Shown here: one piece after another, positions 4,746 through 44,201 of the stretch
Layout of the letters: every line of letters begins with the position of its first letter
How positions within the stretch are numbered: position 1 is the first letter of the stretch
DNA from: Octopus bimaculoides
Lineage: Eukaryota
DNA: 58,087 nucleotides
NCBI RefSeq assembly: GCF_001194135.2
Contig: NC_068998.1
Location: 48,665,095-48,723,181, forward strand
Direction of reading: 5' to 3'
Translations under genes and position numbers: made by a program
The notes under the pieces: generated by a model
Database searches by the model: none
The model's input: only the letters and a program-made list of their open reading frames with translations
What the model was told of the DNA's origin: nothing

Positions 4746-4776
4746 GAAAAGGAAATTCGAGCCTTCAAGTATATGC

Positions 4777-4831
<55 letters not shown>

Positions 4832-5974: not shown

Positions 5975-6340
5975 CAATCAGCTCATATTGGGATTCGAAA
6001 TCTGAATCTGTCCCGCAAAATCGGCGAAGCCGACGAAATTGGGAAAATGACAGAACAGATTTAGGGTGTTTGGGATAAGAGGGAAAATAGTGAAGACAGA
6101 AAAGGAGTCGGTAGGCTTGCGGTAGGCGAGAGGGATTAGGGGGTTGGTGGATATTGCTAATAGTGATAGAGATATGGAGAATATAGTAACGGAGATGTTG
6201 GATACGGTGGTGGTGGTGGTGGGGAATTCCAAGGTATGAGGAAAAGAGTTAATAAAAGAGATGAACTTATCGATCTGTTGTCTGGTGAGGATGGTTGCAC
6301 CAACACAGTTATCTATAGAGTCGTTCGATCTGCTAAAAAT
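5975..6340 (-). pseudogene. Penelope-like element RT fragment (probably same element as 4488-4745)
   Basis: SIDNCVGA (decayed YIDD), FISFINSFPHTLEF, AYRKPTDS and, after a frameshift, HPKSVLSFSQFRRLRRFCGTDSDFES: PLE RT domain 5 to thumb. Confidence 0.75.
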
Positions 6341-6374
6341 AGCAGCGAAATTCTTCAAAACCTCTTCACCTTAG

Positions 6375-19600: not shown

Positions 19601-20118
19601 GTAAGAAACGCATGTAGCAAAACTCAAAGCACTGCTGACGAGATTCTGCACAAAACCTCTTGGTTGTTGAAAGATTTTAGCCACTTCCCAGATGGTCTTC
19701 TGTTTCCACACTTCAAACAACATCAAGGTTAGATAAAATCGGTTCACAGCAAATTCATCAACAGGCTACAAGATAAACAAACAGAGAAAAAGAAAAATGA
19801 AGGCAAAGAGTCTTACAGTCTTCAGATGTTGAAATTTTGATAGAGATATTATTTATATTATTTGCATTATTTACATTTGACGGATATTTGTCCTCATCTT
19901 GTTTGTTGTTAACACAACGTTTCGGCTGATATACCCTCCAGCCTTCATCAGGTGTCTTGGGGAAATTTCAAACCTGGGTTAAGACCAATACACCATATGC
20001 CCAAGGCATGAATTTATAAAATATTTTCAGACGGTCAATTCATTAATAATTGCTTTCTGTTAGTAACCGTTACATACTAAATTAATAAGCATCTTTCTCC
20101 ATTATAATATAGATATAT

Positions 20119-20151
<33 letters not shown>

Positions 20152-23100
20152 CATATACACTTCCCAAAATTGCTGGCCCTACACCAAAATTTGAAACCAA
20201 TATTAAAATACCTTATTAACAGTTCTTACCTGTTTCACCACTTGACCAGAAGCTTTTCGAGCTACATAGTTCTCAGTGATCCCCATGTAATTAGCAACAG
20301 AGAGTTCATCTGATTTTAGACTACTCAGCTGAAAATATATACATACAACAGACAGTCATACATTAATACACATATATATACAGTTAAAACTGAACTGTGA
20401 AAAAACAATTTCTTAGCAAATTCTTTTGGCATTAAGCATTTTTAATAAATTACTTTTTTTCATCAAGAGATGCCCGTTGAATTGCCAACAAAATTCAATT
20501 GATATCATCACCATCATCGTCATTTAATGCCCTCTTTCCATACCGGATTGGGTTGGTCAGTTTGACAAAGAGCTAGTCAGCCAGAGGAGAGTGCCAAGTC
20601 CCACTCTCTGCTTTGGCATGGTTTTCTCAACTGGATACTCTTCCTAATACCAACCACTTTCCAGAGTGTGTTGGATGCTTTGTTTACATGGCACATAGAC
20701 CAGTGTGGTCACAAAGTAACTCACAATACTACTTCTTCCTGACTCAACTGGGGAATAGTTCTGATGGAGGTGGCTTTGTGCCAGGTGATGAGAGGTTAAT
20801 GCATGACAGGGGGACAAAAAGAGGTGGAAGGGATTTTACGGTTGGATGCCCTTCCTAACACCAACCTCTCTGCAGAGTGAACTCAGTGCTTTTTATGTGG
20901 CACTAACACAAGCGAAATTAGTTTTGGCATGACTTTTTACAGCTGGATGCTCTTCCAGATGCCAACCATGTTACAGTGTGGGCTGGATGCTTTTAACATG
21001 GCACCAGCACTGGCAGAGCAACCAAGTAATTCACAAGACAAGGAATTATGATAGGGGCAACTTGTGTCAGAGCATGAAAGGTTAGAGGGTGACAAAGAGA
21101 CAGAAGCAGGTGTTTTGCCACAACAGAGGTGGGCATTAGAGGAGGAGATCCAATATCAAATGATGAAAGGATAGAGTGTAACAGAGAAATAGAGAGGCAG
21201 AAATAGGTGTCTTGCTATAGAGGAGGTACATGGGGGAGAGAGAGAGGAACAGGAAAGGGGCCAGAAACAAGTATAAGTCTAATGAAAATATATGATGCTA
21301 GAAACTAAAGCACCTGATCCCAACTAATAAGCCATACCTGTTTGAAATAAATTATCCAAGAAGGTGTTACGGTAGAGACAATGTCATAGGGTGTTGTAAG
21401 GGCCAGCATGTGTAAATAGTTGGACACAACTAACATCTCAGTGGACTTCTTTAAATCATTATACAGCTTGTCACTGATATCAATATCAATGGACCCTGAA
21501 ATAAAAAGGTTACACAATGTACGTGTATTTATGGAGGGCAGTGTGAAGCAGGAATGATATTACTATTGTACAGGTAATGAGAAAAAGTAAACGAGGTTAA
21601 GTTCTTGCTAATTAAAATCAATAAACCAATTTCAAATCTTAAAACTCTTTACATTTCACACTTATTCCATAACATGCTAATTTACCCACAGCCAAGACTG
21701 GACAAATGTAACTACTCCAGGTCAGTGAAGACCGGGGAACAACAGTGGCCAAAAGATGGTTCCAAACCCCTCATAACCTTTGAACTCCTGAATCAGGGGC
21801 CGCTACAGGATGCAGTTTAAAGTTAAACAAAGGACAAATATTGAAAATTAGATCAGCATTAACCTACCTTTATATACTGCCCTTCCTAAATCACTGATAG
21901 CCAAATTAAAATTAGCAGAAATGGAACTGTTTTCTGTTTTATCATCAGCATTTTCTACATGTGAAGCAGTATTTTGTTTTTGTTTAACAAGGCCCAAGTC
22001 CAGCAAGGACTGAAGGCAGTTTTTCGTTAGTTCATTGATATCACATTCCAGTTCTTTACTTTGGACATTCAACAAGCTATTAGAGATTATCACAAAGAGA
22101 CTTGAAACATCTGTAGCAATCTGTGAAGAGAATCAAGAAAAATTCTTCTATATTTTTGTATAAAACTTCCACAAATAGTGTCACATGTTTAAATTGATCA
22201 TTACCATCATCATCATATTTTAAAAACATCGAATGACTATGAAGGTGCAGCTGAATAAAATAGGGATCATAAGGGTCCATAGTTAAAAGAATTGGTTGAG
22301 AATTGTTGCTCTAATTCCACTGCCAATATTTTACTGCAAAACAGTATTCTATTTTCCCTTATACGGGCCTACCTCAACTTAGCAACTTCAGTTGTTTTGA
22401 GTTTTATCTTTTTTGATCTTCTGTCATTTTTTTAATGAAATTAGTGGAAAAAAAAAAAAAGCTGGGGTATGCCTGTTCTGCTTTTCACTCAAAGAGTGAA
22501 AGATTTTGTTTCCCAGTCAGTCAACAGGTTGTCATCATCATGTTTGATTTTTTTATTTTACTTGACTCAATTAGAATAAACCAACAGGATAGCAAATCTT
22601 TAGCTGAAAGCTTATGGTGAAAGTGAAATTGTGATTACCTGAAGACCAACAAGAGACAGGATTAGCAATCGAATCCCTTTACCATCATCATATGCCAGAC
22701 TGCTGTGACAGCTTTCCATTGGCTTACTGATCAGTTCTTTAACCTGAAGGAAGACAAAATAGAAAAAGTAAAAACAAAAACAAAAAAACATTATAGACTT
22801 AATAAATGAATTTCATCTTCATCATCATCATCATTATTGTTTTAATATCCATTTTTCTATGCTCATATGGGTCAAATGAAATTTTCTCTAGTTGGATGCC
22901 TTTCTTGCCATCAACCCTTGTCTCCAAGCAAGGAGAAATATATCTGGCCCCCGTTTTTCCCACAGAAGACCGGAAATGTACACCCTCACTTACTACTAAG
23001 TTATGAGAATGTTAACAAACTAATTAATACAGGTTGTGAAGCAGTGCTGGGGGTAAAAACACAACACAAACGTAAATATGCACTCTCACACATAGACTCA

Positions 23101-26100
23101 TATACATACAAAGGGTTTCTTTCAGTTTCCGTCCACCAAATCCACTGACAAAAATCTGATCAGCCTGGAACAAAACTTGAAGACGTTTCCCCCCAGGTAA
23201 CACACAGTAAACCTGAAGCCAGCGAAGGAAATTACACCACTTTACAACTACCTTTACAACTACCTTGTTCATACATCTTCATAAATAAATATGTACACAT
23301 CTTCACACCAAAGTAAATTTAAGGTGAACATCTGAATGAATTGTGGAATAATATTTTTTTTACATCTTTAAGAATCCATGGAAATTTAGTTTGCGAAACC
23401 TTAACAAAACTCGTTACCTTTTCTTTGTCCTTTGGTGCAACTATCAGAATGCTTTCTCCCGATTTATCAATACCTGCTCTACCAGCTCTTCCGATCATTT
23501 GTAAATACCTACATCTGCTGATGAAGTACTTACCAACATAAGGGCTGCGCAATATAACTCTAAGCAAAAAAAAACAAAAATAAATAAATATTTGAATTTT
23601 GTAACAGTAGCTGCTCTATAGTAAAAACTTAATTAATATAATATATTTAATATTAATATAATATATTTAATATAAGGGGGCAACCTGGCAGAATCGTTAG
23701 CACGCCAGGAAAAAAGCTTAGCAGTATTTCATCCGTCTTCGCTTTCTGAGTCCAAATGCCACCGACATCAACTTTGCTTTTCATCCTTTCTGGGTCAATA
23801 AAATAAGTACCAGTTATGCACTGGGGTCGATGTAATCGACTTACACCCTCCCCAAAATTACTGTGAATTTGAAACCAATGCAACATACTTAATGTATGTC
23901 TGTGTTTGCAAAGTGAGAAGCTGTGGTTTTTGTCTGAGAAAAATCTTTTTATAGATGTATTATGTTAAAAAACATGAGATGCTTCAGAGCTCATAAAAAT
24001 GAAACTGCCCCAGAAATGACTGCGACAGTGACAGATATGTATTTCGCCATTGTTGTGGCTTTTCAATGTCACACACTTGTGTCACTTCTGAAATGAAATC
24101 AATCAAATCTCTGAGGTATATATAGAGATGGTATACAAACTATACACTGATTTGAAATAGTGCTGCATGAGCAAGATAAAATTCGAATTATGCAATAGGA
24201 ACAGCTCTATAGTGAAAACTTTATCATATAACTTGCTTAATTTCTGTATGCAGCAAAAGAACCCAAAGCTGCAGTTTTCATCTACAAAGGGATTTATTTT
24301 TCTCAGACAAAAATCACAAATTCTGGCTTTTCAACTGTACATGTGTGTTCAGTATGCTATATTGATCAACTTTTTAATAAATAGATAAACTGAACAGAAT
24401 GAGTGTCAAATACAATTGAGTTAAAAGAGTTTGTGGCATTCAACTGAAGAATTCCTCATTTTCCTTGCTGGCATGGACCACGTGGCTTTTCAAGGACTAG
24501 GTGAGATTTTAATCTAAATTATTGCTCTCTTAGACGTAGTATGTACGTAGAGAGGCAGGCTATTGCATAAACAGGTAGATTGAGATGAAGATGTACAATT
24601 ATAAATTTACAAAGGAAAGTTTGAAATTTCTTACTTTCATTTTGAATGAATATATAATTCAAAACAAACCGTTTAGCAGGAAGATTGACACCTGCCGCCA
24701 ATGTTGAGGTACAAGCTAATAAGCACAAAATGTTAGACGAGTATGCATCTTCTATCGACCTCCGTTCATCACTTGTAAGCCCACTGTGGTGGTAAGCAAG
24801 ACCAAAAGGAATTGTTTGTGCTAAAACCGGGCACAAATAGCCATTGTTGTCAGCTTTTAAATCTTTCAGCAGTTGTTTTTTTTGAGATTTGTGAATATCT
24901 AAGAAGTTCCTGCAAATAGAAATGGTCAAGATATAGAAGAAAGAAAAAGACATTAGCTGCATTTAACAAAAAGATGTTCCTTTAACCAATGAGGGTATTT
25001 TAGCTACTTCACTGTCTCTAGAATGAAAACTGCATGCTTATAGCACCAAACCAGAAGACTAACTTAGCTAGAAATACCAATAAAATGAATCATTTGAAGA
25101 GTATGGAAGAAAATGATCATGAACAAAAGTGGCTGAAATGGGGTCCCTCAAAAGGATCTTTGGAGTAACATTACTTGACAGAGATCGGGGAGCAGCTACT
25201 TCTCCACACTGAAAGGTCACAGCTCTGGCACTATAGACACATGATGAGAATATCACAGAAAAGAATTGCAGGTTCTTTTCTGTTTGGCTGCCACTTTTCA
25301 ATTTCTGTTCCAATTCATTTCATATTAGGTGTAATGATGTAGTTTTATATGCTAATCATTGACATGAAATTCCAGGCAGTGCACAACATAGTCATGTTAT
25401 TATGAAGAATTTATAAGAAGACTAATGCTGAAAGATACATGAATCATGAGAGATGAGAGGTCTTCAAACATTTAGAAAATTATGACTTGAGTATGGCCCA
25501 TGAGATGTCCAACTTAAATCTAAAACAAGTGAGTTGAGAAAGAAAGCAGACATGTGGAATACCAGTCACTGTGTGCAAGAGAGATTACTCAGATGTTTAA
25601 TAAAGTATAAATGAAGAACTCCCATCAATGAGTAAACAGTCGAAGGTCTCAAGGTGGAGCAGAGACTCAGAGAAAGTGGAAAAAATCTATGGCTTTCACA
25701 GAAGAGGTGGACATCAAATTGGAGATTACACTGTTTAAAAAACACCTATGGTTGTGTGGTTGAGGAGGTCTCTTTGCAATCACATGGTTTGGGTTCAGTT
25801 ATGAGGGTAAGTATCTTCTATTATAGCCCTGGGATGACCAGTGCCTTGTGAGTGGATTTGGTTGTCAGAAACTGTGTGGAAGTTTGCCGTGTGTTGTGTG
25901 TGCATGTGTGTGTGTATACACACATAACACACACACACATATAGTAAATCCAAACAAAATGATGACACAAACACAATAAATAACAATGCGAGGATGTGGT
26001 ACGTGTGAAGTATTAGCAGACGCTCAGGGAAAGAAAGAAAGGAGGTTGAATATGTTTTCAGCAAAGCTCTTCTTCAGAAACAGAGGTAAATCCAATAGAA

Positions 26101-29100
26101 AAGGAAGACAAAGGAAAAATAAAAATATATTCGTCCTCAGCCGCCTGGATTACTGCTCACAGCTGTGGTCACCCACCAGTCTGAAATTAACAGCAGACCT
26201 TGAAGCAATCCAGAGGAGATTCACAAAGAAGATTGTCTCTTTGCAACTGGTCAGCTACTGGGAAAGGCTGAAACAGCTAAGACTCTACTCCCTGGAGAGA
26301 AGGCGGGAGAGGTATGCAGTAATATACATCTGGAAGATCCTGGAAGGAATTGTGCCAAATTTTGGCATTGAAAGCTACACCAATGCCAGAACGGGACGGC
26401 ACTGCATAGTGCCAAAGATCCCNNNNNNNNNNNNNNNNNNNNNNNNNNNNNNNNNNNNNNNNNNNNNNNNNNNNNNNNNNNNNNNNNNNNNNNNNNNNNN
26501 NNNNNNNNNNNNNNNNNNNNNNNNNNNNNNNNNNNNNNNNNNNNNNNNNNNNNNNNNNNNNNNNNNNNNNNNNNNNNNNNNNNNNNNNNNNNNNNNNNNN
26601 NNNNNNNNNNNNNNNNNNNNNNNNNNNNNNNNNNNNNNNNNNNNNNNNNNNNNNNNNNNNNNNNNNNNNNNNNNNNNNNNNNNNNNNNNNNNNNNNNNNN
26701 NNNNNNNNNNNNNNNNNNNNNNNNNNNNNNNNNNNNNNNNNNNNNNNNNNNNNNNNNNNNNNNNNNNNNNNNNNNNNNNNNNNNNNNNNNNNNNNNNNNN
26801 NNNNNNNNNNNNNNNNNNNNNNNNNNNNNNNNNNNNNNNNNNNNNNNNNNNNNNNNNNNNNNNNNNNNNNNNNNNNNNNNNNNNNNNNNTATATACACAC
26901 ATATATACATACACACACGCACACATACACATATATGCATTTATGCATGTATGTGTATCTTTGTGTTTGTCCCTCCAACATCACTTGAATACCAGTGATG
27001 GTTTATTTATGTCCCTGCAACTGAACAGTTTGAGAAAAGAGTCCAACTGAATGAGCACCAGACTTAAAACTCAAGCACCGGGGCCGATTTGTTCAACTAA
27101 ACACTGCAAGGCTGTATCCCAGCATGGCCACAGCCGAATGACTAAAACAAGCAAAACAAACGGAAAATATGAATCAAAATGGTATAAAGACATTCCATAC
27201 CTTTTATATTTGGCCAACATTTTGGTCAGCATGGTTGCCACATTTTCACAGTTTTTCTTTGTGGAACAAAATACCAAACATGAGTTGTCAGGAATGACTT
27301 CCAATACGAGACCCAGCAGATGGTCAGGATCTATTTTGCACATTTCCTTTTTGTACTGAAATAAGAAACAATACAAGAATCTTTAACCCTTCAGCATTCG
27401 GATTATTGCATCAATGTGTAATGCTTATTTATTATTCATTGCTTTGAAATTAATGATACATCACCTTATATACTCTTTTACTTGTTTCAGACATTTGACT
27501 GTAGCCATGCTGGAGCACCGCTTTAGTTGAGCAAATCGATCCCAGGACTTATTCTTTGTAAGCCTAGTACTTATTCTATCAGTCTCTTTTTGCCAAACCG
27601 CTAAGTTATGGGGACGTAAACACACCAGCATTGGTTGTCAAGCGATGATGGGGGGACAAACACAGACACACAAACATATATATATATACATATGCATATA
27701 TATACGACGGGCTTCTTTCAGTTTCCATCTACCAAATCCACTCACAAGGCTTTGGTCGGCCTGAGGCTATAGTAGAAGACACTTGCCCAAGGTGCCATGC
27801 AGTGGGACTGAACCCGGAACCATGTGGTTGGTAAGCAAGCTACTTACCACACAGCCACTCCTGCACCNNNNNNNNNNNNNNNNNNNNNNNNNNNNNNNNN
27901 NNNNNNNNNNNNNNNNNNNNNNNNNNNNNNNNNNNNNNNNNNNNNNNNNNNNNNNNNNNNNNNNNNNNNNNNNNNNNNNNNNNNNNNNNNNNNNNNNNNN
28001 NNNNNNNNNNNNNNNNNNNNNNNNNNNNNNNNCAAGGGTCTTCTACTATAGCCTCGGGCCAACCAAAGCCTTGTGAGTGGATTTGGTAGAGGGAAACTGA
28101 AAGAAGCCCATCGTATATGTGTGTGGGGGGGGGGATCCCTGCAACACTGCTTGACAATTAATGCTGGTGTGTTTACGTCCCCATAACTTAGCGGTTTGGC
28201 AAAAAGAGACTGATAGAATAAGTACTGGGCTTACAAAGAATACGTCCTGGGGTCGATTTGCTCGACTAAAAGTTGACTGAAACAAATAAAAGAATAGTCC
28301 ACCTCTTAAGAGATCAGAGAAATCGTTTAAAAATCAGTTACCAAATTTTTTTTTTTTTTTGTTAAATGTGTAAAACAAAATACAAAAATTAATAACAAAC
28401 CTGAAATGTGGCCACTCTGTTATGAACTAGGATCTCTTCTGAAAATTTTGGACATACACGATAGATATTGTCGTCAAGCTTGATGTATTCAGTGAGTGTA
28501 ACCTTTTTTTAAAAACAAAATATAGCAGATCAAAGAATAAATGAGAAAAGATTAAGTTTAGAGACCATTGCTCCTCCACTCCCCCTCTACACACACATAA
28601 ACAAAAAGTCAAATCTTAACAGTAAAACCATAATGATGTGTCCCTGGACAATAACCGGTATGTAACCCAGGCTATATTTTCTTAATGTATGTTTAAGCAA
28701 CATTAATCATGGACTCAAATCAACGCTTTTACTGGACCATACTCATTTATCTCAGTTCTGAGTTCAAATTCCAACGAGGTCGATTTTGCCTTTCATCCTT
28801 TCAGGGGTCGATAAATTAAGTACCAGTTGCATACTGGTGTAGATCTAATCAACTGGGCCTCCTCCCAAAAAATTTCGGGTCTTGTGCCTAGAGTAGAAAA
28901 GAATCGTTAGCATGCCAGGCGAAATGCTTAGCGGTATTTCGTCTACCGTTACGTTCTGAGTTCAAATTCTGCCGAGGTCAACTTTGCTTTTCATCCTTTT
29001 GGGTTTTGGGGTTGATTAAATAAGTACCAGTTACACACTGGGGTTGATGTAATTGACTTAATCCCTCTGTCTGTCCTTGTTTTTCCCCTCTATGTTTAGC

Positions 29101-29998
29101 CCCCTGTGAGCAATAAAGAAAAGAATATATAAATATGATATCTGGGTGTGCCTCTTTCTGCCCCAACATAGGCATATGTACGCATGGGAATGTGTACACC
29201 TTGCTCAGAGTTGCACTAAACACTAATTGAGATGTTGTAGCCTTATTTACACTGCCCTAACTTTAGTGGTTTGGCAAAAGTGACCGATACAATAAGCACC
29301 AGGCCTTAAAATAAATACCAGGATCAATTGTTCAGCTAAACCCTTCCTAAACCCTTCAAGGCAGGGCTCCAGTATGGCCACAGTCTAGAGAATGAAACGA
29401 GTAAAAGATGAAAGATATTACTCACAGGTCGAAAATCATTTATGTAAAGCTCTGCCTTCAGGAATGTCTTCAGGTCGTTGATGTTACTTAATGTGGCACT
29501 CATACCAATTATTTGGCAGGAATCTGTAAGAAGGGAAAAACCAACCATCAACAACAATATTTAGCAGATGACAAACGACAACAGCAAAATTTCTTTCAAC
29601 TAGAAGCATTCAAATCATTTTCCTACTTTAGATGTTTTTGCAAACAACTTGCACATGCAAGTGCTACCAGTCGAGAACTCCACATACCGGAAGCCAGCAA
29701 GTGTAGGGGGTCATCAAGAGAGAATGTGCGCTGTTTCAGGGCCTACCTCTCGATGGCATCATTGCGCACAGGTTCCTCTCACTGATATGAGGCCCCACTT
29801 GCTAGATCAACTGGTTATCAAATAAAGCTCAATAGAGATGCAGGAGTGACTGTGTGGTAAGTAGCTTGCTTACCAACCATGTGGTTCTGAGTTCAGTCCC
29901 ACTGCGTGGCGCCTTGGACAAGTGTCTTCTACTATAGCCTCGGGCCGACCAAAGCCTTGTGAGTGGATTTGGTAGACAGAAACTGAAAGAAGCCTGTC

Positions 29999-30036
<38 letters not shown>

Positions 30037-33000
30037 GTGTGTGTGTGTGTGTGTGTGTGTATTGCTGTTTGTCCCCCCACCATCGCTTGACAACCGATGT
30101 TGGTGTATTTATGTCCCTGTAACATAGCGGTTACAGGGACATGATCTCCTTAATGTATAATAATGCCATAAAACATAAGACTGTACTTCAGTAGTTCAAG
30201 TCGAAGTTACTTACATCCATAACTTAAAGTTTTAATTAAAGTTGCTTCCAGCACAGCACCTCTGCGCCCTCCTTCACCCAACATGTGCAGCTGAAACAGA
30301 AAGTTGAAATTCTCTTATATTAAATATATTTTACAGAAAATTCTAGATTAAAATCTACATATTTTGAATCAGTGCTTCATTGAAATAGTTACAGTAGTTG
30401 ACATCAAACCAAGAGGTCAATAGTTCATATTTCATCATCAACTTTTTCATGCTTGCATGGGTCTGTTGTGGTGGATTTTCTATGGCTGAATGCCCTTCCT
30501 GTCAGATGGAATTTGAGCCAGCTTTTATCTACAAATGCCGTTCCTGTCACCAATCCTCACCTGTTTCCAAGCAAGGCAATATTCTCCGATGACCATTCAT
30601 GTCTCAAAAGATTCGAAAAAACAAAAGGACACTGCTGTATGACCACGTTTGGATGGGGCTTTTTACATACCACTGTCACGAGGAGCCAGTCAGGCAGCTC
30701 TGGCAGTGACCCACGCATGAATGAATGGTGCTTACCGCGTGCCACCAGCACTGGTAACAGCCACAACTACAATTTCCTCATGTCTTTTCTAAAAGATATT
30801 AGAGTCAAAGTTGAATAAAATTGTTCCAACTGGCAATAGACACACACACACACACACATAAATGAAAAGAAAGATCACTGGCGTCCGTCCAAGTTTCTGT
30901 ATAAGACTACAATAGAGATGTAATGTTACCGTGCTCTCTCTCTCTCTCTCTACATATATGCAAACATCCATAAGCATTTTTTTTTTAGAGATGAGGAATA
31001 ATGTACATTATTTACATTTGACGGATATTTGTCCTCATTTTCTTTGTTGTTAACACAAGGTTTTAGTTGATATACATTCCAGCCCTCATCAGGTGTCTTG
31101 GGGAAATTTCGAATCTGGATTCTCATTCCCACAGGCATATGGTACAGTGGTTAAGAGCGTTGGCTATTAACCTCAAGATTTCGAGTTCGATTCCAGGCAG
31201 TGACCTGAATAATAATAATAACATCGAAAAATACCTTAGGAATGAGAACCCAAGACACCTGATGAAGGCTGGAGGGTATATCAGCCGAAACTCTGTGTTA
31301 ACAACAAACAAGATGAGGACAAATATCCGTCAAATGTAAATAATATCCATAAGCATGTCTAAGCATTTTTATGTTTTGTCAAATATAATCAAGAGCATAT
31401 ACATCATGATTACTATTGCTTAAATAAATTTTTAAAAAATTAACAACAAACAAAAGCCTTACTTCATCAACAACCATCAATCCCAGTTTGCCCATTCGAT
31501 TCAGTTCAATAAATTGATTAATCAAACTGTGAGCCTTCTCAATGGTTGCAATATACAGGGTTCCCTTCTGGGGACGATTAATTGGTGGGTAACGACCTTT
31601 GCTCCCTGCATACTCTTCTACATGGAAGTTCAATTCAACAGCCAGTTCTGCAATGGCCTTCACCTTGGTTGAAAGACAACAAATGACGATTATGGATTTA
31701 TTTTTATCATTAGATAGCTGAAACAATAGACTTCTAGATTTTAAAAGCATTATTTACAGCAACATTGAGTGCACCCATCTCCTTTATTTTATTATATTCT
31801 ATAATAAGTAATTAATTACTGACATGTCAGCATTAATATTCATTTATTTATGCGCCCTTTTCAAGCCTAGCCAGGCTCATGGGCCCGATTTCCCAGTTTC
31901 TATGGCGTATGTGTTCTCCCCAGCTGGACGGGACATCAGTCTATCGTAGCATTACTCAAGAAACAGGAAGAAAGAGTGAAAGAAAGTTGGGGCGAAAGAG
32001 TACCACAGGGGTCGCCACCACCCTCTGCTGGAGCCTTGTGGAGCTTTTAAGTTTTCCATGCTAGCATGGGTTGGACGATTTGACTGAAGACTGGCGAACC
32101 AGATGGCTGCACCAGGCTCCAATCTGATCTGGCAGAGTTTCTACAGCTGGATGCCCTTCCTAACGCCAAATACTCCAAGAGTGTAGTGGGTTCTTTTACG
32201 TGCCACCGACACAAGGGCCAGTCAGGCGGTACTGGCAACGTGTGTGTAGTAAATATAAAGCAAACAAGATATGCTGATGATAAAGTGAGGGTCACTGTAT
32301 GACATCTAAAATACAAAAGTGATAATGATGATAGTGGAATCATCAGACCACTAGCATAGCTGGGGAGGGCGGTCCGCTCTGGGTGGCACTTTTGGGTCTG
32401 GTGTAGGCAATATGTGTTTTTTGTAGGATCTGGGAGCAGCAAATGGAAGAGCCACCCTGGGTGGTACACACTCTGGCTACACTAGTGCATTAGACATAAT
32501 ATGGGATGATTTTGATAATAAATATTTGTGGTCAGACTTTACCTTTTCTTGTACGATTGAAACGTAAGGTAGGACTAACATGGCGTTTTTCTTTTGGCAC
32601 AGCAACTGTCGAAGAATGAGTATTTCAGCAACAAGAGTCTTGCCACCACTTGTAGGCAAAGAGTAAATGAGATTCTGATTGGTTGATTGTTCAGCTAATG
32701 ATAAACACTCTTCCTGCCAATCTAAGATGAAGACATAAATAAACTGATTTTGATAAAACAATGTAGTTGATCAAAAAGTAATGTCGTTTACAATTGTTCA
32801 TCAACAAAACAGCCAATGCTTTGACAAACACACATGCAATCATTAACACACGCACACACACACATACTATTTGGTTTCTGTCAACTTTTTAAAAAAACAC
32901 AAAAAAGGTGGCTGAGTGATAAGTAGATTGTTTACCAACCACATGGTTCTGGGTTCAGCCCCACTGCGTCGCACCTTGGGCAAGTGTCTTCTACTATAGC

Positions 33001-33088
33001 CTCGAGCCGACCAAAGCCTTGTGAGTGGATTTGGTAGACGGAAACTGAAAGAAGCCCATCGTATATATATATATATATATATATTATA

Positions 33089-33166
<78 letters not shown>

Positions 33167-35488
33167 CATGTGTGTGTGTGTGTGTGTGTATATGCTTATG
33201 TGTCTGTTTTTGTCCCGCCAACATTGCTTGACAACCGATGCTGGATTGTTTACGTCCCCGTAACTTAGCGGTTCGGCAAAAGCGACACGATAGAATAAGT
33301 ACTTGGCTTACAAAGAATAAGATCCTCGGGTTGATTTGCTCGACTGAAGGCGGTGCTCCAGCATGGCCGCAGTCAAATGTGTGAAACAAGTAAAAGAGTA
33401 AAAAGAATAACAGAATATCAACAGAATCTTAACTCACCATAAAGTTTCTTGATGCCTCTCTGTTTCTCAAAGAGTTCTTTGACTTTCAAAGGAAGACCAT
33501 AGAATGGTCCAATATCAAAATTGCCAACGCCCATCTCCTTCTCTTTCTGCACAATTTCAAGACCTGCTTCTGCTTCAGCACGCCTATCATGTTGCATTTT
33601 CTCAACGTATTTAGCAATGTTTTGCGAAGTGTGCCCTTGAGCATTCTGGAATAGGCGCTGGTGGATGTGTTTCTTTAGAAAAGATGTACCCATGGTCTTT
33701 GGATTTGAAGAGGTTTTCGAATTTGTATCATCTTCCTTAGAAAGGACACTTTCTTCCTAAACAAGTTGAAAACAAAGGTTATGATTCAAACATGAAGTGG
33801 ACAAATATCCGTCAAATGTAAATAATGTAAATAATTTAAATAATGTGCAAAGAATATGAGTTGAGAAAAAATATCATCATCATCATCAGCCTTAACAAAT
33901 TCCATCTAACCCATGGAAATGTGGAGAAATGAATATTAAACAAAGAAGATAATCACATTAGACACACCAGATAATGCATTCTATAGATAACCTTACTCAC
34001 TTTCGAAGAATTTTTGACTTGTTTCTCCTCCTGGTTCTTGAAATGATTCAGAGATTTCTTTTTGATTTCAAAATCATCATTTCCAAAGATTGAATCTAAC
34101 ATTGTTGAGATTGATGAGGAGAACATATCACTCTGGGAACTACGAGTTGGTGAAAAATGGTCGGCATCTACCGACTCTTTAGAAAGCTTTCTTCGGAAAG
34201 GGCTGGATTCTGAGACTTTTGCACTGCTGGTTTTAGTCGAATCTTTTGCTGGTTTGTGAAGTGGAGACAGACTGAAAAGTTCGGTCGAATAAGTTTTGAC
34301 TGAGTGAGGTAGATGCTGACCAGAAAAGAGATCAGCGCTTTCAGATTGTACAATAATTTCATCTGGTGGTGTTTCATATAATCCAGTAACTGTTTTATTT
34401 CCTTGAAATTCTTCTGTTCTGTCATTACAGAATTTTTTCTGTTGCTGGACGGCACCAACAAAATGTGTGAGCTGAGCTGTTTGTGGGGCATTTTGCTGCC
34501 TGTCATACTGAATAGCAATTCCAGAAATATCAAGCTCTGCTAGATCAGCATCACTGTTCTCAAATAAATCTCCCTCATCATCACAATCACCATCATCTAT
34601 TAAAATATCCTGAAAATAAAATAAGAAGTGCCAGAGAAAGGTATGTAATGCACCACTCCACAATTCCATCCTGGTAATCAACAACTTGACTGAAATAGGC
34701 ATCAAATCTGTCCCTCACCCTCCCTCCAGTCCTAACCATGCTCCCTGTAACTTTTGGTCGTTTCCCCAAGCTGAAGCAGATGAGACACCTTTAGGCAGAG
34801 GACTTCAGTTTGGAGGACTTCCATGGGGCCTTCATGAAGTAGCCAGAGCACTACAACAAATGCAATGAAGTCATCATATCTTACTTTGAAGGAGATTAGA
34901 GTTTGGTACTTCTTTGAAATTAATAAAAGTCTTTCCTGAAAAAGTCTCAAAACTTCTGGGACATAATACAGGTACACTATAAAGTAGTAATAAGTTTGAG
35001 GAATCATGTCCTTCATTTCTTTTGCAGAGAAACCAACTTTAACCCACCTCTAAATGTTGAACCAGAGGTAAAAATTAATGAAAGCAAATAAATCAAATAT
35101 CATTTTTCACAGTGTCAATAAAGGAAAACTTTTTTTTAAGAAATACCTGAGATAAATGTGTTGATGACAGTTTTTTAGATTCTTTTCTACAGTGGCCACT
35201 TGTTTTTATTGGACGTATCATCTGTTCTGAATTTTTGGGATTCGAGATGTTTGCATAACCTTCCTCTGCAAATGTGCTCTTAAACCAAATTTGTTTTTTC
35301 TGAGGGGAAATTTTTGATGATGAGGCTTTAGTGGCAACTCCAGATGAACGTTGTGAGGAGTTTTCCGTTTGATTATCTTCAGTCTTCCTTCTGCTTGCTG
35401 ACGGAAACTGAAGGCTATAATGAGACAATGCTCTTTTCTGTACTCTCGCCTTACGGCATGGGCCTTCTTCAATAACATCATCATTCAT
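16695..35488 (-). CDS. HELQ: Helicase POLQ-like (HELQ/HEL308), Ski2-like SF2 helicase, 19 coding exons, 1241 aa
   Basis: Exons (minus): 35488-35147, 34609-34001, 33756-33438, 32721-32543, 31663-31463, 30290-30215, 29523-29426, 28502-28401, 27355-27201, 24909-24670, 23559-23418, 22743-22639, 22120-21868, 21495-21338, 20328-20230, 19765-19592, 18952-18839, 17725-17591, 16919-16695. All introns GT-AG with consistent phases; total 3726 nt. Motifs: [69 protein letters not shown], Hh[12 protein letters not shown]. No polymerase domain, so not POLQ. Confidence 0.96.
17973..18197 (+). mobile_element. piggyBac-like MITE (diverged)
   Basis: TTAA at both ends with imperfect TIRs (TTAATCTTTTAGCATT ... 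AATGCTGTAGGGTTAA). Related pieces at ~17035-17210, 19035-19130 and 27383-27460. Confidence 0.6.
19863..19982 (-). mobile_element. 3' part of tRNA-headed hammerhead-bearing element (family D)
   Basis: Matches the 3' halves of the elements at 31134-31345, 38620-39050 and 40694-41098. Confidence 0.8.
19911..19956 (-). ncRNA. Minimal type I hammerhead ribozyme motif (intact core)
   Basis: GACAC-CUGAUGA-A-GGCUG-gagggtatat-CAGCC-GAA-AC-GU-U-GUGUU: stem I GACAC/GUGUU, stem II GGCUG/CAGCC, loopless palindromic stem III ACGU, GUU cleavage triplet. Confidence 0.75.
26138..26422 (+). pseudogene. CR1/L2-group LINE ORF2 C-terminal fragment in a HELQ intron
   Basis: [12 protein letters not shown]...[12 protein letters not shown]...[21 protein letters not shown]; runs into a gap. 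Confidence 0.8.
27472..27866 (-). mobile_element. CORE-type SINE family B (full length)
   Basis: tRNA head, CACCTTGGGCAAGTGTCTT core (CORE-like), internal (TA/CA)n, tail CTCCAGCATGGCTACAGTCAAATG. Confidence 0.8.
28033..28294 (+). mobile_element. CORE-type SINE family B, inverted relative to 27472-27866
   Basis: Direct sequence match; head lost in the gap. Confidence 0.75.
29840..30130 (+). mobile_element. CORE-type SINE family B (3'-truncated)
   Basis: Head and core match 32907-33408. Confidence 0.8.
31000..31345. mobile_element. Family D inverted dimer: minus 3' part (31000-31129) plus full plus-strand element (31134-31345)
   Basis: tRNA-like head with A box TGGTACAGTGG and B box GAGTTCGATTCC, (AAT)n, then the hammerhead segment at 31254-31299 (stem III mutated). 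Confidence 0.8.
31842..32048 (-). mobile_element. SINE with family A core but a different 3' tail
   Basis: AAGCTCCACAAGGCTCC...GGTGGCGACCCCTGTGGTACTCTTTC...CTTCCTGTTTCT as in family A, then an unrelated tail ending (TAAA)n. Confidence 0.6.
32907..33408 (+). mobile_element. CORE-type SINE family B (full length, representative)
   Basis: tRNA head GGTGGCTGAGTGATAAG...GGGTTCAGCCCC, CORE-like CACCTTGGGCAAGTGTCTT, internal (TA)n(TG)n, tail GGCGGTGCTCCAGCATGGCCGCAGTCAAATG...(AAAAGA)n. Other copies at ~8040-8180, 23090-23240, 39311-39710, 44980-45065, 51950-52045, 53410-53690, 54800-55130, 56157-56370 and 56985-57290. Confidence 0.85.
34687..34965 (+). pseudogene. Mariner transposase 3' remnant in a HELQ intron
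   Basis: [25 protein letters not shown] corresponds to the decayed HPPYSPDLAPCDF motif. Confidence 0.7.
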
Positions 35489-36089
35489 AGCAGTCCCTAT
35501 CAAGGGTGCATGAACTAACAGCAGGCTGACAGATCTGAAATAAGTTGTGCACATATATTAGCTAAACATACAAAACAAATGGGATACAATGCAATGTTTG
35601 CAGTAAACTCTATCGAAAACTGTTTTGAGTTCAAATCCCATCAGAGGTGACTTCACGTTTCCTCACTGCACCCATCTGGAAAAGTAACTGCAACTTACAG
35701 ACTAGTTTCTTTGAGATTTGCCTCTAAACTTTCATACTGTACCGATCCCTCCTGTCTGAACTTGGATTCATGGACAGGCTAACATTACGCAACATGGTAA
35801 CATAAACCTATAAGAATTGGATGAGATATGATGGCTCGGCCGTCTCTCCCCAGTTCTTATATTAATCATTAAAATTCAGAAATACAACAACACGAGGGAT
35901 AACGGTAACAACAGATCAATAGTTTATTCTAGGTTGGTGTAGAGCCGTTTCGTTCCTGGGTAAATAGGCATGCCACTAGAATACCAAAGGAAGCTTCGAC
36001 CACATGTCGGTATCGAGCTGAGAGAATACGTGTTGTCACCACCGCTGCTGGAGAGAAAAGAGATCGGACGCTATAGCTTTCTCTCCACC

Positions 36090-38140: not shown

Positions 38141-38619
38141 TTATACTCATACTTTATCAAGGTCAATCTGTGCCAGGTGGCTTCACTTTTTGTGCTTTAC
38201 CATGGCAACAGTCCAGATACTTATTGGTCAGACCACGTATCTGGTCTGTTGGCTTGAACAGCTTAATCAGTTTGAATACTAAAGTTCCTAAGAAAAATGA
38301 TGTCTTTATTTTCTATTATTTTTGCAGGCTTTTGTTCCCATCAATACTCATTTGGGAGTCCAGACTTACAGCATGTGATCCAGTGCAAACACCAATTAGG
38401 GACAATTGGTATACTCAGTTGAGTCTAACACAGAACAGCCAGAGATGAGGTAGTTAATCGTTTCTCAAATGGTACCACAAAAGTGGCAGGTAGGATCAGC
38501 AAATATTTTTAAGAATGTTACTTTGGTAATTTCTAGCGAGTAGACATGTATCCCGTCTTCAGCAAACCACCTGTTCTTATCCCTTTATCATACTTTCACC
38601 TTTCTCAATACTACACTCC

Positions 38620-39050
38620 AATTATTTACATTATTTACATTTGGATATTTTTCCTCATCTTGTTTCTTGTTAACGCAACATTTTGGCTAATATACCCTCC
38701 AGCCTTCATCAGGTTTCTTGGGGAAATTTAGAACCTGGGTTCTCATTCCTAAGGTATTTTTCAATGTTGTTGTTATTATTACTATTATTATTATTATTTA
38801 GGTCACTGCCTGGAATTGAACTCAGAATCTTGAGGTTAGTAGCCCGCACTCTCAACCCAAATGTAAATAATAATAACATTGAAAAATACCTTAGGAATGA
38901 GAACCCAGGTTTGAAATTTCTCCAAGACACCTGATGAAGGCTGGAGGGTATATCAGCCGAAACGTTGTGTTAGCAACAAACAAAATGAGGACAAATATCC
39001 ATCAAATGTAAATAATGTACGTAATTCCTCATCTCTTAAATATAGAACTG
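38620..39050. mobile_element. Family D inverted dimer (minus element with clipped head plus plus-strand 3' part)
   Basis: Matches 31000-31345 and 40694-41098. Confidence 0.8.
38926..38971 (+). ncRNA. Minimal type I hammerhead ribozyme motif (intact core)
   Basis: Identical to the reverse complement of 19911-19956. Confidence 0.75.
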
Positions 39051-40316
39051 TTCTATACTCCAACTCACTTGAGAGGCTCTTGTCTTGCAAGTTACTTGGG
39101 GACTTCCCTAATACAGGTACCATAAAAAAAAGCACCCAGTACATGCTGTAAACTGGTAGATGTTAGGAAGTATATCAAGCTGTAGAAACCACACCAAAGC
39201 ACGACGTTGGAACTTGGCACAGTCCTCTGGTTCTTTGTTTCCTGTCGATCCATCCAACTCAAACTGGAATGGAAAAAGGGATGTTAACTTACGGTGATAC
39301 ACACACACATTCTTTTATTCTTTTATTTGTTTCAGTCATTTGACTGCGGCCATGCTGGAGCACCGCCTTTAGTCGAACAAATCGACCCCAGAACTTATTC
39401 TTTGTAGGCCTAATACTTATTCTATCGGTCTCTTTTGCCAAACCGTTAAGTTACAGGGACGTAAACACACCAGCATCGGTTGTCAAGCGATGGGGAGGGG
39501 ACAAACACAGATGCACAAATGCACACAGACACACACATATATATATATATATATATGACGGGCTTCTTTCAGTTTCCGTCAGCCAAATCCATTCACAAGG
39601 CTTTGGTTGGTCTGAGGCTATAGTAGAAGACACTTGCCCAAGTTGCCATGCAGTGGGACTGAACCTGGAACCACGTAGTTGGGAAGCAAGCTACTTAACA
39701 CACAGCCACTCATATGCCTATACATAATATACACATGCATTGTGTGCGTGTGTGTTGATAAGTGACAAAAGAACAGGTGTTACATAATCACTCTCATTAG
39801 CTTACAGCTGTTTCTGCTGTGAGAAATATTGCATGCTTATAGCTTTCTTAAAGCCATTTGAAAAGCCATTTATAGTGCAAAGCAATTAGATGCATAGAGT
39901 TGGTTACATACAGAACAATATATTTAATGATATAATGATGCAGTTTGAGGGTGAAAAGCCTGTCCAGAGATACACACACATATATATATTTATATAATTG
40001 AGATTCAGTTGAATTAAGTACAAAGCACAAAGTCAGTCCAGTATTACTGCACAAACACACACATACACACACACACATGAATATACATAAATACATGCAA
40101 ATAGATAATACATACACATAGATAGACATGTACTTATACAGATGTACATCTATGATTTTTTTCAAAGAATCTATATTAAAATATAAAAAAAATAAACAAC
40201 TTTTTTTTTTATTTTATTTTTAAAATTTTTATTTGAGTTGGTTTTGTTCTTTCAGGAACAAACTAATTTCTTAACTTGTTCTGTCTTGGGACCATACCAC
40301 TAAACATTCCAACACA

Positions 40317-43021
40317 ATGTCAGAGAGGTCTAATAGAAGGCGAAAACTTCCACAGTGGATGCTGTCTTTGGTCAGTTCCAATACTGAAACTACAAGAGAT
40401 TCTGATAATAATCAGTTTGATGCCAATTGTGATGTTGAGTCAGAAGATAATGACATAGAAGAGCTCTCTAAGTATTGGTTTATCTTTTATTAAATATTTT
40501 TGGTTATCTCTAATCCTATGCCTGTCCAAAGCATTTTCATAAGTTTGTCTTAAATGTTCATATTTAAATGTCATGTATGACCTATAGACACTAGGAAAAT
40601 CTGTTTTGTATATCACATGTAATACTAAGGACAGACAAAGAGTTAATAACTCGTCAAACATAAAGATTCAAAGTTTTACAAAACAATTTAGCATGTACAT
40701 TATTTACATTATTTACATTTGACAGATATTTGTCCTCATCTTGTTTGTTGTTAACACGTTTCGACTGATACACCCTCCAGCCTTCATCAGGTGTCTTGGG
40801 AAAATTTCGAACGTGAGTTCTCATTCCTAAGGTATTTTTCAGTGTTGTTATTATTATTATTATTATTATTATTGTTATTATAATTCAAGTTATTGCCTAG
40901 AATCGAACACAGAATCTTGGGGTTAGTAGACCCTGCTATTAACCACTGCGCCATATGCCCGTGGGCACCTGATGAAGGCTGGAGGGTATATCAGCCAAGA
41001 CGTTGTGTTAACAGCAAACAAGATGAGGACAAATATCCGTCAAACATAAATAATGTATATAATGTACATAATTCCTCATCTCTTAAATATAGAACTAAAT
41101 TAGCATGTATTAGCACATGGTTGGGAAGCAAGCTTCTTAACTTCAATGCCTTGTCTGCACCAAATTTTGCCGAATTACAGTCACCATAATTAATTGGTTA
41201 CTTGCTGCCTTATTGCATTATTTTTGAGATAATGATTGTACATTATTAAGAAATGTAGTTGGTTTATCATATTTCCAACAGCCTTGACCGAGCCAATACA
41301 GTAATGTATATGATGAGTGAACAAGAGCTGCTACATATTGCCATGAAAACACTTCATACGGTAAGACTAAAGTTGCATATGATGCTTGTCCTAATTCAGC
41401 ATGAATCACCATTTCCACCACTAATGAGGGTTGGACAATCCCCACATTATCTCACCACTCATTTCCCATTGGTCACATTATTATTATTATTGGTGAGCTG
41501 GCAGAATCGTTAGCACGCCAGGCAAAATGTTTAACTGCATTTCGCTCGTCTTCACTTTTTGAGTTCAAATTCCGCCGAGGTCGACTTTGCCTTTCATCCT
41601 TTCGGGGTCGATTAAATAAGTACCCGTTACGCACTGGGGTCGATGTAATCGACTGAAACCCTTTGTCTGTCCTTGTTTAGCCCCCTGTGGGCAATAAAGA
41701 AATAAGTTGTTCATAGTTGATAATCCAGCCTGAGAGTCTAACAACAGTTAGAGAAAATCTTCCATTTCTAACCCTAAATTCCATAAGCCTTCATATATTT
41801 GACCAACAGTGCTACATAATAGTGCTACATGTACCCTGAATGCAGAGGATATGAAGACTGGAAAGGAAGCTGGTTGTACAATGCCAGTGTGCATGTGCAA
41901 CAAAGTGCAAATGTGTTGGGAGAAAAATTTAGCAGAACACGAAAAGCTGGTGGCATGCCAAAACACACCCAGTACTCTCTGTGAAGTGGCTGGTTTTAGG
42001 AAGGGCGTCCAACCATAGAAACCATGCCAAAGATAATACTGAAGCTCAACCCAGCTTGCCGGTCCTGTCAAACCGTCTGACCCATGCCAGCATGAAAAAC
42101 ATGTTAAATAATGAAATAAGCAACAGATATATGCAAGGTAAAATACTGTGCTGGTATGGTTATGTGATGCATACGGATAGACTCCTGCGTAACAAGGTGC
42201 CTGATGATATGTATTTTTGTTGGTCTTTTTATGTGTGTGTGTGTGTGTGTGTAAAAGCACCCATTACACATTACACTCTCAGAGTGGTTGGCATTAGGAA
42301 GGGCATCCAGCTGCTGAAAATTATGCCAAATCACACTGGAGTCTGGTGCAGCATGCCAGCATAGACAACAAACGTTAAATGATGATGATGATGATGTGTG
42401 TACGCATGAATTTTAATTGCATATATTATCCTTAGTTCTTTCCTATTTTTGATTTGATTTTAGGAAAATGAAGATCTTCGCTCTGATGAAACACTCACCA
42501 CAAAACCTACAAAAATATGTTTCAGAAACAAAACTCTTGTTAACTTTCAATCATCCAGTCATTGGAACCAAGTAAATTCTGTTGCTATTAATGATAACAG
42601 CATTGATGATAATGACAGTGAAGACAACCAAAGAAGGGTTGATACGAGGCGTCCTCACATGAAAATCGAATCTCATAAGAAAATTAATGATTCTGTTAAA
42701 AACAAGAAATTAAAAACAAAGACACCAAAGACTTCTGTAAATATTCATCAAATAAGGAAAGATACTGAACCAGTTCCTCCAGATACATTGTCTGGTCACA
42801 GCCATCAAAAAACCACAGGTACAATATTGACTAATCGAGATATTGAGACAGATCAGATGGCAACAAACAAAGACATTCATATTAATAACAAACAGTGGAC
42901 AGATGAAAATATTCAAAAGGATAAAAATGGCTCCACTTTACCCTTCACTATATTCAGCTCCAGAGAAACAATCTCTCGTCAAAAACCCGATCTGTCAATT
43001 TTAGATGAAATATTTTTGTAA
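40317..43021 (+). CDS. CYREN: CYREN/MRI (C7orf49)-like NHEJ regulator, 3 coding exons, 263 aa
   Basis: Exons 40317-40471, 41282-41360 and 42464-43021 with GT-AG junctions and matching phases (2, 0). Protein MSERSNRRRKLPQWM... (R-x-L-P-x-W Ku-binding motif), NTVMYMMSEQELLHIAMKTL (aligns ungapped with human TRTVYCMNEAEIVDVALGIL as I recall it), C-terminus PDLSILDEIFL* (human VLKYVREIFFS*). Confidence 0.78.
40694..41098. mobile_element. Family D inverted dimer (full minus element 40694-40965 plus plus-strand hammerhead/3' part)
   Basis: Minus-strand tRNA-like head (TGGCGCAGTGG...GTTCGATTC) abuts CACCTGATGAAGG; both hammerheads carry core mutations. Confidence 0.8.
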
Positions 43022-43140
43022 TAAATTTGAAAATCTGATTAAATTTTCTTCTTTCCTTTTAACTGATTTTACATCCAGTTTTCCTTTTCTTCATTTTTCT
43101 GTGAGATGGATGAGCCAATCTAATCTATTTATATATATAT

Positions 43141-44161
43141 AATATAATATAGGATAAAATCTTTATAAGAATTTATCAAGTAGTCAGCGTGAAAAAAACC
43201 CCATAAGGAAAAAAACTCATCGTCTTTTTCCCATAAATATATAATTTATATAAGGGCATTAACTATATAGTTATGCCTCACGCTTAGAGGGACTAAAAAA
43301 GTAAAAAAACTACCAAAAAATAAGCAACATATTTATTGAAAGCGAGGGAATGCAACTTTCAAAAATTAATCTCCTAAAAACATTTAACTTAATGGCAAAT
43401 CACTGGTTTCTCAATTAGTACAGCAACAACTGTGAAGTAAGCTGCATCTTTTGTTCATCAGTACACGTATGGTCGAGACATATAAAAAATAAACAAAAAT
43501 CAACATACCACGATGTGCCCAACAATAGTACGATGACTTCTGTTCATTATATATCCATGAAAGAGGTTAGAATTTATCCGGTTGCATCTCAGTAACACGT
43601 GCTTATACAGAATAATATTCAGCACTGAATATATTCTAATTATTTATAATATAATATAGGATAAAATCTTTATAAGAATTTATAAAGTAGTCAGCGTGAA
43701 AAAACCCCATAAGGAAAAAAACTCCATGCTGACTACTTGATAAATTCTTATAAAGATTTTATCCTATATTATATTATAAATAATTAGAATATATTCAGTG
43801 CTGAATATTATTCTGTATAAGCACGTATTACTGAGATGCAACCGGATAAATTCTAACCTCTTTCATGGATATATAATGATGAACAGAAGTCATCGTGGTA
43901 TGTTGATTTTTGTTTATTTTTTATATGTCTCGACCATACGTGTACTGATAAACAAAAGATGCAGCTTACTTCACAGTTTTTGCTGTATTAATTGAGAAAC
44001 CAGTGGTTTGCCGTTAAGTTAAATGTTTTTAGGAGATTAATTTTTTAAAGTTGCATTCCCTCGCTTTCGGTAAATATGTTGCTTATTCTTTGGTAGTTTT
44101 TGACTTTCTTAGTCCCTCTAAGCGTGAGGCATTACTATATAGTTAATGCCCTTATATAAAT

Positions 44162-44164
<3 letters not shown>
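43141..44164. repeat. Large imperfect palindrome with a 507-bp-period direct repeat
   Basis: Arms 43241-43698 and 43725-44164, 26-nt spacer. 43141-43218 is repeated at 43648-43724. Confidence 0.9.

Positions 44165-44201
<37 letters not shown>

Follow-up and report, generated by a model that had tools for sequence, protein, structure and literature searches.

What kind of insertion leaves a short non-coding element fused head to head with an inverted fragment of itself at three unrelated sites of one genomic stretch? The question is raised by 58,087 nucleotides of the Octopus bimaculoides genome (contig NC_068998.1 of RefSeq assembly GCF_001194135.2, positions 48,665,095 to 48,723,181 of the forward strand; hereafter the window, with coordinates counted from its first letter). 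In this window, blastn searches with three candidate monomers place a repeat family, designated family D, at five loci: three inverted dimers (L1, 30987-31344; L2, 38622-39049; L3, 40698-41096) and two solitary copies (S1 and S2). A self-comparison of the window sets these five segments apart as a repeat family separate from the large family of short interspersed elements (SINEs) to which most other repeats of the window belong. As detailed below, each dimer bears the marks of one insertion event, and family D is probably a short, non-coding, SINE-like retroelement that was inserted via two-sided priming of the type associated with Penelope-like elements (PLEs).

Inverted dimers within single target-site duplications

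The first-pass annotation had described, at the three dimer loci, one element linked through its 5' end with a partial copy, in inverse orientation, of its own hammerhead/3' half, with tails pointing outward and a different breakpoint each time, and alignment of all eight arms of the family bears this out. In every dimer the 5' end of a longer copy meets an inverted copy that is 5'-truncated. All 3' termini face outward and the 3' region is present twice per dimer, giving eight terminal motifs for the five insertion sites of the window. The inverted repeats lie at 31001-31102 and 31249-31350 in L1 (102 nt, 88%), at 38642-38777 and 38866-39001 in L2 (136 nt, 90%), and at 40693-40757 with 41005-41069 plus 40733-40793 with 40966-41026 in L3. 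The partial arm starts at GGAATGAGAA in L1, inside the internal (TAA)n in L2 and at CACCTGATGA in L3, and the flanks of the three dimers are mutually unrelated. Within each dimer the arms abut with 0-6 nt between them and differ from one another by 8-12%, with indels, and no assembly gap lies inside any of the three. The loci had been placed correctly, although the elements extend slightly past the limits first given for them, to those listed above; at L2 the architecture likewise stands, with the correction that its longer arm, too, has lost some sequence at the 5' end, about 25 nt.

The duplications that flank the dimers were assessed by comparing the best ungapped match in the 30 nt outside the boundaries with that of 3000 random flank pairs from the window. 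In L1 the 12-nt sequence ATCCATAAGCAT at 30966-30977 recurs without mismatch (12/12) at 31345-31356, with a chance probability of about 0.003. In L2 CTACACTCCAA (38611-38621) matches CTATACTCCAA (39053-39063) at 10 of 11 positions (about 0.03), and in L3 TTAGCATGTA is found at both 40688-40697 and 41100-41109 (10/10, about 0.005). The latter match rises to 12/13 if it is extended by eye, the left duplication then being AATTTAGCATGTA (40685-40697, its last 10 nt perfect) and the right one AAATTAGCATGTA (41097-41109). Thus, a single duplication of 12, 11 and 10-13 bp, respectively, encloses both arms of each dimer, while neither arm has one of its own, which excludes two independent insertions as the usual origin. 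Taken together with the divergence between arms, the enclosing duplications also exclude an assembly fold-back.

The two outer ends of a dimer are not equivalent. Following the 9-nt repeats that form the element's terminus, an extension, GTACATAAT-TCCTCATCTCTTAAATATAGAACT, is present on the shorter arm only in three of three dimers. It is 33 nt long in L2 (39017-39049) and L3 (41064-41096), the last 25 nt being identical between these two loci (25/25) and occurring nowhere else in the window, and in L1 it is represented by 20 nt (30987-31006) followed by a run of nine A (A9, 30978-30986). The three long arms, by contrast with the short ones, end within the repeats, directly at the duplication. 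Both solitary copies are also without the extension; the sequence after the repeats in S1 begins with ATCTCT and might be a diverged version of it. If three extensions were placed randomly on eight ends, the observed pattern of one per dimer and always on the shorter arm would have a probability of 1/56, a figure calculated post hoc. As the same 3' region and terminus stand on both arms, two separate initiations on RNA 3' modules are indicated for each dimer. A conserved stem closing the repeat region (AGATGAGGA with TCCTCATCT) was considered as a further 3' feature and is kept as a lead only: it is predicted in all three extended arms and is significant in just one of them (z = -3.6, -1.0 and -0.3).

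The full family D element is about 270 nt long and has no reading frame. Its 5' end, CCCAC(A/G)GGCATATGG, is common to the two independent full copies, those of L1 and L3, and two full copies starting at the same base indicate that the cDNA had reached a defined RNA 5' end. This is followed by a head, an internal (TAA)n, a core (..GGAATGAGAACCCAGGTTTGAAATTTCCCCAAG), a hammerhead-like segment, an AC-rich stretch (AACAACAAACAAGATGAGGACAAATATCCGTCAAAT) and a terminus of one to three 9-nt units (GTAAATAAT). The head contains an A-box-like TGGCGCAGTGG and a B-box-like AGTTCGATTCC, recognised by eye, at tRNA-like spacing, and receives no score as a tRNA from ARAGORN or from the Rfam tRNA model, so that a tRNA derivation is indicated by the box motifs alone.

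In L1, the left duplication is followed by the A9 run (minus strand; T9 on the plus strand), which is counted as inserted material because it lies inside the duplication. It adjoins the end of the inverted partial arm (30987-31129, minus), which is 5'-truncated at GGAATGAGAA, ends in the shortened extension (..GTACATTATTCCTCATCTCT) and has a hammerhead motif broken by a change of G12 to A and by other changes. The full-length copy (31128-31344, plus) starts with CCCACAGGCATATGG and comprises, in this order, the head with its A- and B-box-like motifs, the (TAA)n, the core and the region of the hammerhead. It ends with ..AAATGTAAATAAT, where the right duplication, located by the flank-match search, begins. 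At the junction the two arms overlap by 2 nt (CC). The prediction that such a dimer would fold into a long hairpin when transcribed agrees with the computed structure of L1, a hairpin of about 110 bp (-173.6 kcal/mol, z = -16).

The longer arm of L2 (38622-38858, minus) starts with GGGTTGAGAG, about 25 nt of head sequence being absent, and terminates in (GTAAATAAT)2. Between it and the partial arm lie six bases of filler, AAATGT (38859-38864, plus), which together with the next 7 nt (38859-38871) read AAATGTAAATAAT, identical to the 3'-terminal motif of the element. This suggests that synthesis switched briefly, at the AATAAT homology, to another RNA's tail as template. The partial arm (38865-39049, plus), which starts inside (TAA)n and carries the full extension, retains an intact minimal hammerhead motif at 38926-38971 with predicted cleavage between 38966 and 38967.

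In L3, the full-length copy (40698-40965, minus) starts with CCCACGGGCATATGG and ends in (GTAAATAAT)2; 3 nt are deleted at the helix III position of its hammerhead. The partial arm (40966-41096, plus) has its GAAA box mutated to AAGA. It begins with CACCTGATGA, 5 nt before CUGAUGA and inside the 5' strand of helix I, in agreement with the earlier statement that the inverted part starts almost exactly at hammerhead stem I. At the outer end of the full copy (40692-40703), the adjoining target bases, TACAT when read on the strand of the element, agree with GUACAU, with which the extension opens and which would follow the short terminus in the RNA. A few bases of target-RNA homology may have been used in the priming of this copy.

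The solitary copies complete the set. S1 (19840-20008, minus; blastn 19851 to about 20008) has lost most of its head by internal deletion and shows no difference from the family consensus in the 89 nt that the two share. Its minimal hammerhead motif at 19911-19956 (minus) is intact, and it has no resolvable target-site duplication. S2 (33784-33847, plus; blastn 33787-33841) is strongly 5'-truncated and consists of the last 60 nt or so, with three GTAAATAAT-type units; its possible duplication, CAAAGGTTATGA and CAAAGAATATGA, matches at 10 of 12 positions by eye and is non-significant against random flank pairs. No family D copies were found in exact-pattern scans of metagenome, viral and prokaryote genome contigs, and a protein search with a spurious 90-aa frame across the L1 dimer, aimed at copies miscalled as reading frames, returned no match.

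A minimal hammerhead motif near the termini

The family consensus contains, 50-90 nt upstream of the termini, the motif GACAC-CUGAUGA-A-GGCUGG-(8 nt)-UCAGCC-GAAA-CG-UU/GUGUU (the slash marking the predicted cleavage site). Its parts are an intact core, a 6-bp helix II with a basal G10.1-C11.1 pair, a 5-bp helix I and the cleavage dinucleotide UU, while an unpaired nucleotide, a bulged A, stands between A9 and G10.1. Helix III is missing, and in its place is the self-complementary A15.1-C-G-U16.1 (ACGU). The core features of a type I hammerhead (CUGANGA...GAAA, UH, and helices I and II) are present at 38926-38971 (plus) in the partial arm of L2 and at 19911-19956 (minus) in S1.

Since Rfam gave no hammerhead match, a descriptor of our own was combined with simulation. 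A scan of both strands of the 58 kb returned two matches only (38931 plus and 19951 minus), both in family D. By chance, 300 first-order Markov simulations yielded 0.04 matches per window when helix lengths were relaxed, and no match when they were set to those observed. In a 56-nt segment, the structure with helices I and II lies within 0.6 kcal/mol of the minimum-energy fold. The recurrent traits of minimal hammerheads in metazoan PLEs have been listed as a G10.1-C11.1 pair, palindromic positions 15.2-16.2, and a helix II that is long where helix I is short; such hammerheads have been argued to work as dimers, and in the schistosome genome they were noted in pairs, on opposite strands and with 100-700 bp between the members (Cervera and de la Pena, PMC4209133). 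Every listed trait is present in the family D consensus and in the two intact copies. Judged by its sequence, the consensus would carry a minimal, dimer-type PLE hammerhead motif, a predicted ribozyme.

It had been proposed to relate the breakpoints of the inverted arms to the ribozyme cleavage site, and among the copies of the window none coincides with it. No arm and no solitary copy starts at the predicted site, and in L3, where that site lies between 41004 and 41005, it is 39 nt downstream of the start of the partial arm at 40966. A connection of the breakpoints with cleavage by the ribozyme was therefore rejected, and the position of the L3 breakpoint within helix I has no evident link to the mechanism.

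A different role can be imagined, to which we give only a small chance: that the hammerhead acts not as a cutter but mainly as an RNA-RNA dimerisation module, pairing via the ACGU palindrome and loading two SINE RNAs symmetrically on a dimeric PLE reverse transcriptase-endonuclease. If this were true, it would explain both the priming on the two target strands and the high frequency of inverted dimers. In that case, the regular occurrence of the 33-nt extension on the arm that aborted would preserve a trace of where, and in what order, the two priming reactions started in vivo, and family D would be a polymerase III-driven SINE partnered with a PLE, an arrangement so far proposed only for schistosome elements and retrozymes.

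Proposed two-sided priming and its competitors

PLE insertions are frequently 5'-truncated, and often an inverted 5'-truncated copy adjoins the main one at its 5' end, which leaves the unit bounded by inverted repeats; a tail of 30-40 bp is often present as well, at one end only (Craig et al. 2021, PMC8557442). More recently, it has been demonstrated that purified PLE protein cleaves and extends both target strands in vitro, and that reverse transcription begins at two adjacent internal RNA sites, the sequence between which equals the genomic tail (Frangieh et al. 2024, PMC11167929). The family D dimers match these descriptions in their two initiations per event, their alternative termini 33 nt apart, their hammerhead motif near the termini and their single duplication, and it is on this match that PLE two-sided priming is proposed. 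The suggestion of the first-pass annotation that the inverted partners reflect PLE-type mobilisation thus gains support from the duplications, the one-sided extension and the PLE-type traits of the hammerhead, and we consider it somewhat better than an even prospect.

The anatomy, the duplications, the one-sided extension and the hammerhead motif with its specificity are seen in the sequence itself; which enzyme acted, that both strands were primed and how the events followed one another is inferred. A PLE reverse transcriptase-endonuclease would nick the two target strands with a stagger of 11-13 bp, and each free 3' end would serve as primer for copying a family D RNA from its 3' module, one start falling in the 9-nt repeats and the other about 33 nt further downstream. 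One cDNA would reach, or nearly reach, the RNA 5' end, while the other would abort at a variable point; the cDNA ends would then be joined with 0-2 nt of overlap or a few filler bases, followed by fill-in. The expected outcome is a copy whose 5' end abuts a partial copy in inverse orientation, with outward tails and one duplication around the whole, and productive priming on one strand only would yield a solitary 5'-truncated copy. Self-priming of a snapped-back cDNA was considered as a route to the dimers and rejected, as it would duplicate the 5' end rather than the 3' end.

Several observations weigh against this pathway. The sample comprises five insertion events from one window, and direct partial tandems forming pseudo-long terminal repeats (pseudo-LTRs), the other hallmark of PLEs, are absent from all five. 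The divergence of the arms from the consensus is unequal, with 2 versus 9 differences in L1, 10 versus 3 in L2 and 6 versus 5 in L3, which is unexpected for co-inserted copies of one RNA and suggests either two template RNAs or chance; a consistent excess of divergence in the partial arms was rejected as an account, the direction being opposite in L1 and L2. The hammerhead motif is intact in two of seven copies, the other five being broken mostly at the two CpGs of CCGAAACG or via the 3-nt deletion, and breaks at CpGs are what post-insertion decay would be expected to produce. Rfam reports no hammerhead at gathering thresholds over the whole window, nor at E values up to 10 over 30.8-41.3 kb or on a 91-nt piece, and family D pieces of 91-96 nt match neither its hammerhead nor its tRNA models. 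No autonomous PLE sharing the 3' module of family D was found in the window. PLE-like coding remnants, degenerate and recognised by eye, do occur on the minus strand beside an assembly gap, at 4488-4778 (GIY-YIG-like, ..NLIYVITCSGCGHHYIGQT..) and 5978-6358 (..YRKPTDS..); both are negative in Pfam and without similarity to family D. The former fragment has one 78-aa relative, 71% identical, in a sequencing-run assembly, and the 1.6-kb contig of that relative likewise shows no similarity to family D. Furthermore, SINEs that depend on certain clades of long interspersed elements (LINEs) typically end in short tandem repeats as well, and one arm ends in A9.

The comparison with the main SINE family has a bearing on both sides. 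Dimers account for three of five family D events versus at most one of about 22 copies of that family (Fisher p = 0.013), an enrichment of the architecture in family D within this small sample. The only head-to-head pair of the main family consists of a full-length copy (27460-27867, minus) and a 5'-truncated one (28033-28290, plus), with arms 81% alike, an assembly gap between them (27868-28032) and a flanking duplication that is weak at best. This pair, which has no hammerhead, may represent the same architecture, in which case the dimers would not be specific to family D.

The most substantial competitor, unlikely as it appears, is that family D is an ordinary SINE moved by a LINE with a repeat-type 3' end (of the L2, CR1 or RTE type, L2 here being a LINE name) and that the dimers are by-products of second-strand priming related to twin priming. 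It would account for a terminus with a variable number of 9-nt units and for the A9 at one end, and the 11-13 bp duplications are within the LINE range; reverse-transcriptase fragments are also present in the window (open reading frames at 49181-49519 and 25986-26420, seen by eye and negative in Pfam), and the possible pair in the main SINE family would fit as well. On the other hand, both arms of each dimer carry the same 100-190 nt plus the terminus. Classical twin priming, as Ostertag and Kazazian are said to have described it in 2001, inverts the 5' portion of a single RNA without duplicating its 3' terminus. Moreover, a dimer share of three in five is far above the rate of the main SINE family here, this explanation has no place for a one-sided 33-nt extension or a PLE-type minimal hammerhead, and no LINE of the window shares the 3' module. 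A blastn search found none with a family D tail, and the family's termini are formed by the 9-nt repeats or the extension, with A9 at one of eight ends only.

The remaining explanations fare worse. It is improbable that a dimer combines two independent events, a second copy having landed beside or in the 5' end of an older one, or that it results from later local rearrangement: the arms do differ in divergence as if of different age (2 versus 9 in L1, 10 versus 3 in L2), yet the duplications enclose whole dimers and not single arms, the arms abut with 0-6 nt at three loci when only five loci exist in 58 kb, and the extension is always on the shorter arm. Foldback elements or miniature inverted-repeat transposable elements (MITEs), DNA transposons bearing long terminal inverted repeats for recognition by their transposase, would also show long inverted termini and flanking duplications, and mariner-type remnants are present in the window. 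Such an origin is nevertheless very improbable, as the inner repeat ends differ at every locus, the outer termini are unequal, with a 20-33 nt extension on one of them, the duplication length varies between 11 and 13 bp, the central head is asymmetric with a defined 5' end, and solitary 5'-truncated copies exist. Least credible of all is an artefact of a gapped draft assembly: although many N gaps occur in the window, several of them inside SINEs, the arms are 8-12% diverged with indels, none of the three dimers contains a gap, and the flanks are unique and carry a duplication.

Relation to known elements and other features of the window

The insertion architecture described here is already known from PLEs, and the value of family D is that it displays the complete signature in a very small element. 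Like PLEs (Penelope/Poseidon, Neptune, Naiad and Chlamys), it has an inverted 5'-truncated partner at the 5' end of the main copy, with inverted repeats around the unit, a one-sided extension of about 30 nt and frequent 5' truncation, and a hammerhead motif is predicted in its terminal module. Unlike them, it is about 270 nt long, has no reading frame, possesses a putative polymerase III-type head and shows no pseudo-LTR among five events; no autonomous PLE linked to it by sequence was found in the window.

Other comparisons are instructive. The schistosome retroposons Sm-alpha and Sj-alpha, which are short, tRNA-related, polymerase III-type, hammerhead-bearing and dispersed in high copy number, resemble family D in being short and SINE-like with a hammerhead motif. 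They have a canonical hammerhead that is found by Rfam-type searches and often stand in tandem arrays, whereas family D has a minimal, helix-III-less form that Rfam misses and a head that is not scored as a tRNA; in the literature compared, inverted dimers with a shared duplication are not part of the descriptions of Sm-alpha and Sj-alpha. Animal non-LTR retrozymes and non-autonomous PLE derivatives such as MRC1 of Chlamydomonas are likewise non-coding, with a PLE-type terminal module or a type I hammerhead, and the Chlamydomonas derivatives have been proposed to borrow PLE enzymes (PMC8557442). Retrozymes, also proposed borrowers of PLE enzymes, form tandem arrays and circular RNAs, while family D is dispersed, is never in direct tandem in the window and has a SINE-like head. 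Finally, in the well-established twin priming of LINE-1 both target strands prime and an inverted 5' segment lies within one duplication, as is proposed for family D, but the second priming uses an internal site of the same RNA and no 3' end is duplicated, whereas both family D arms start at the 3' module.

Such an element is of interest for practical reasons as well. No class of retrotransposons is less well understood than PLEs: their complex insertions, inverted and tandem, and the part played by their hammerhead motifs are open questions, and the first in vitro PLE system dates only from 2024. A 270-nt non-coding passenger with the insertion signatures of PLEs offers a compact natural reporter of the mechanism, in which a few hundred bases suffice to read junctions, start sites and duplications. 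Octopus genomes are rich in PLEs and SINEs alike. Repeat annotators are likely to split such dimers or to label them as MITEs, and intronic dimers would form double-stranded RNA of roughly 100 bp in pre-mRNA.

The last point applies to L1. Exons of a Pol-theta-like, Hel308-type helicase gene extend over about 17279-35554 on the minus strand, with matches to DEAD, Helicase_C and helix-hairpin-helix domains and with helicase domains of DNA polymerase theta as the best solved relatives. Introns of this gene contain the L1 dimer as well as the two solitary copies of family D, and L1, being intronic, would give a hairpin of about 110 bp in the helicase pre-mRNA.

A young, very large palindrome is found at 43122-44172. 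Its arms (43233-43698 and 43725-44172) are 93-98% complementary around an asymmetric 26-nt centre, a 97-nt direct copy of its inner end lies at 43122-43218, and its right outer end abuts a (TA)n microsatellite. The palindrome has neither sequence kinship with family D nor a hammerhead motif, and could represent a further complex insertion, tandem and inverted in the style of PLEs, or a foldback element.

Among the other features of the window are a genuine tRNA-Glu(CTC) gene at 3411-3483 (63.8 bits in Rfam; also called by ARAGORN), which adjoins mariner-like remnants, a 415-aa reading frame with multiple C2H2 zinc fingers at 45141-46388 (minus), and a fragment of a Mos1-type transposase helix-turn-helix region at 57249-57644 (minus).

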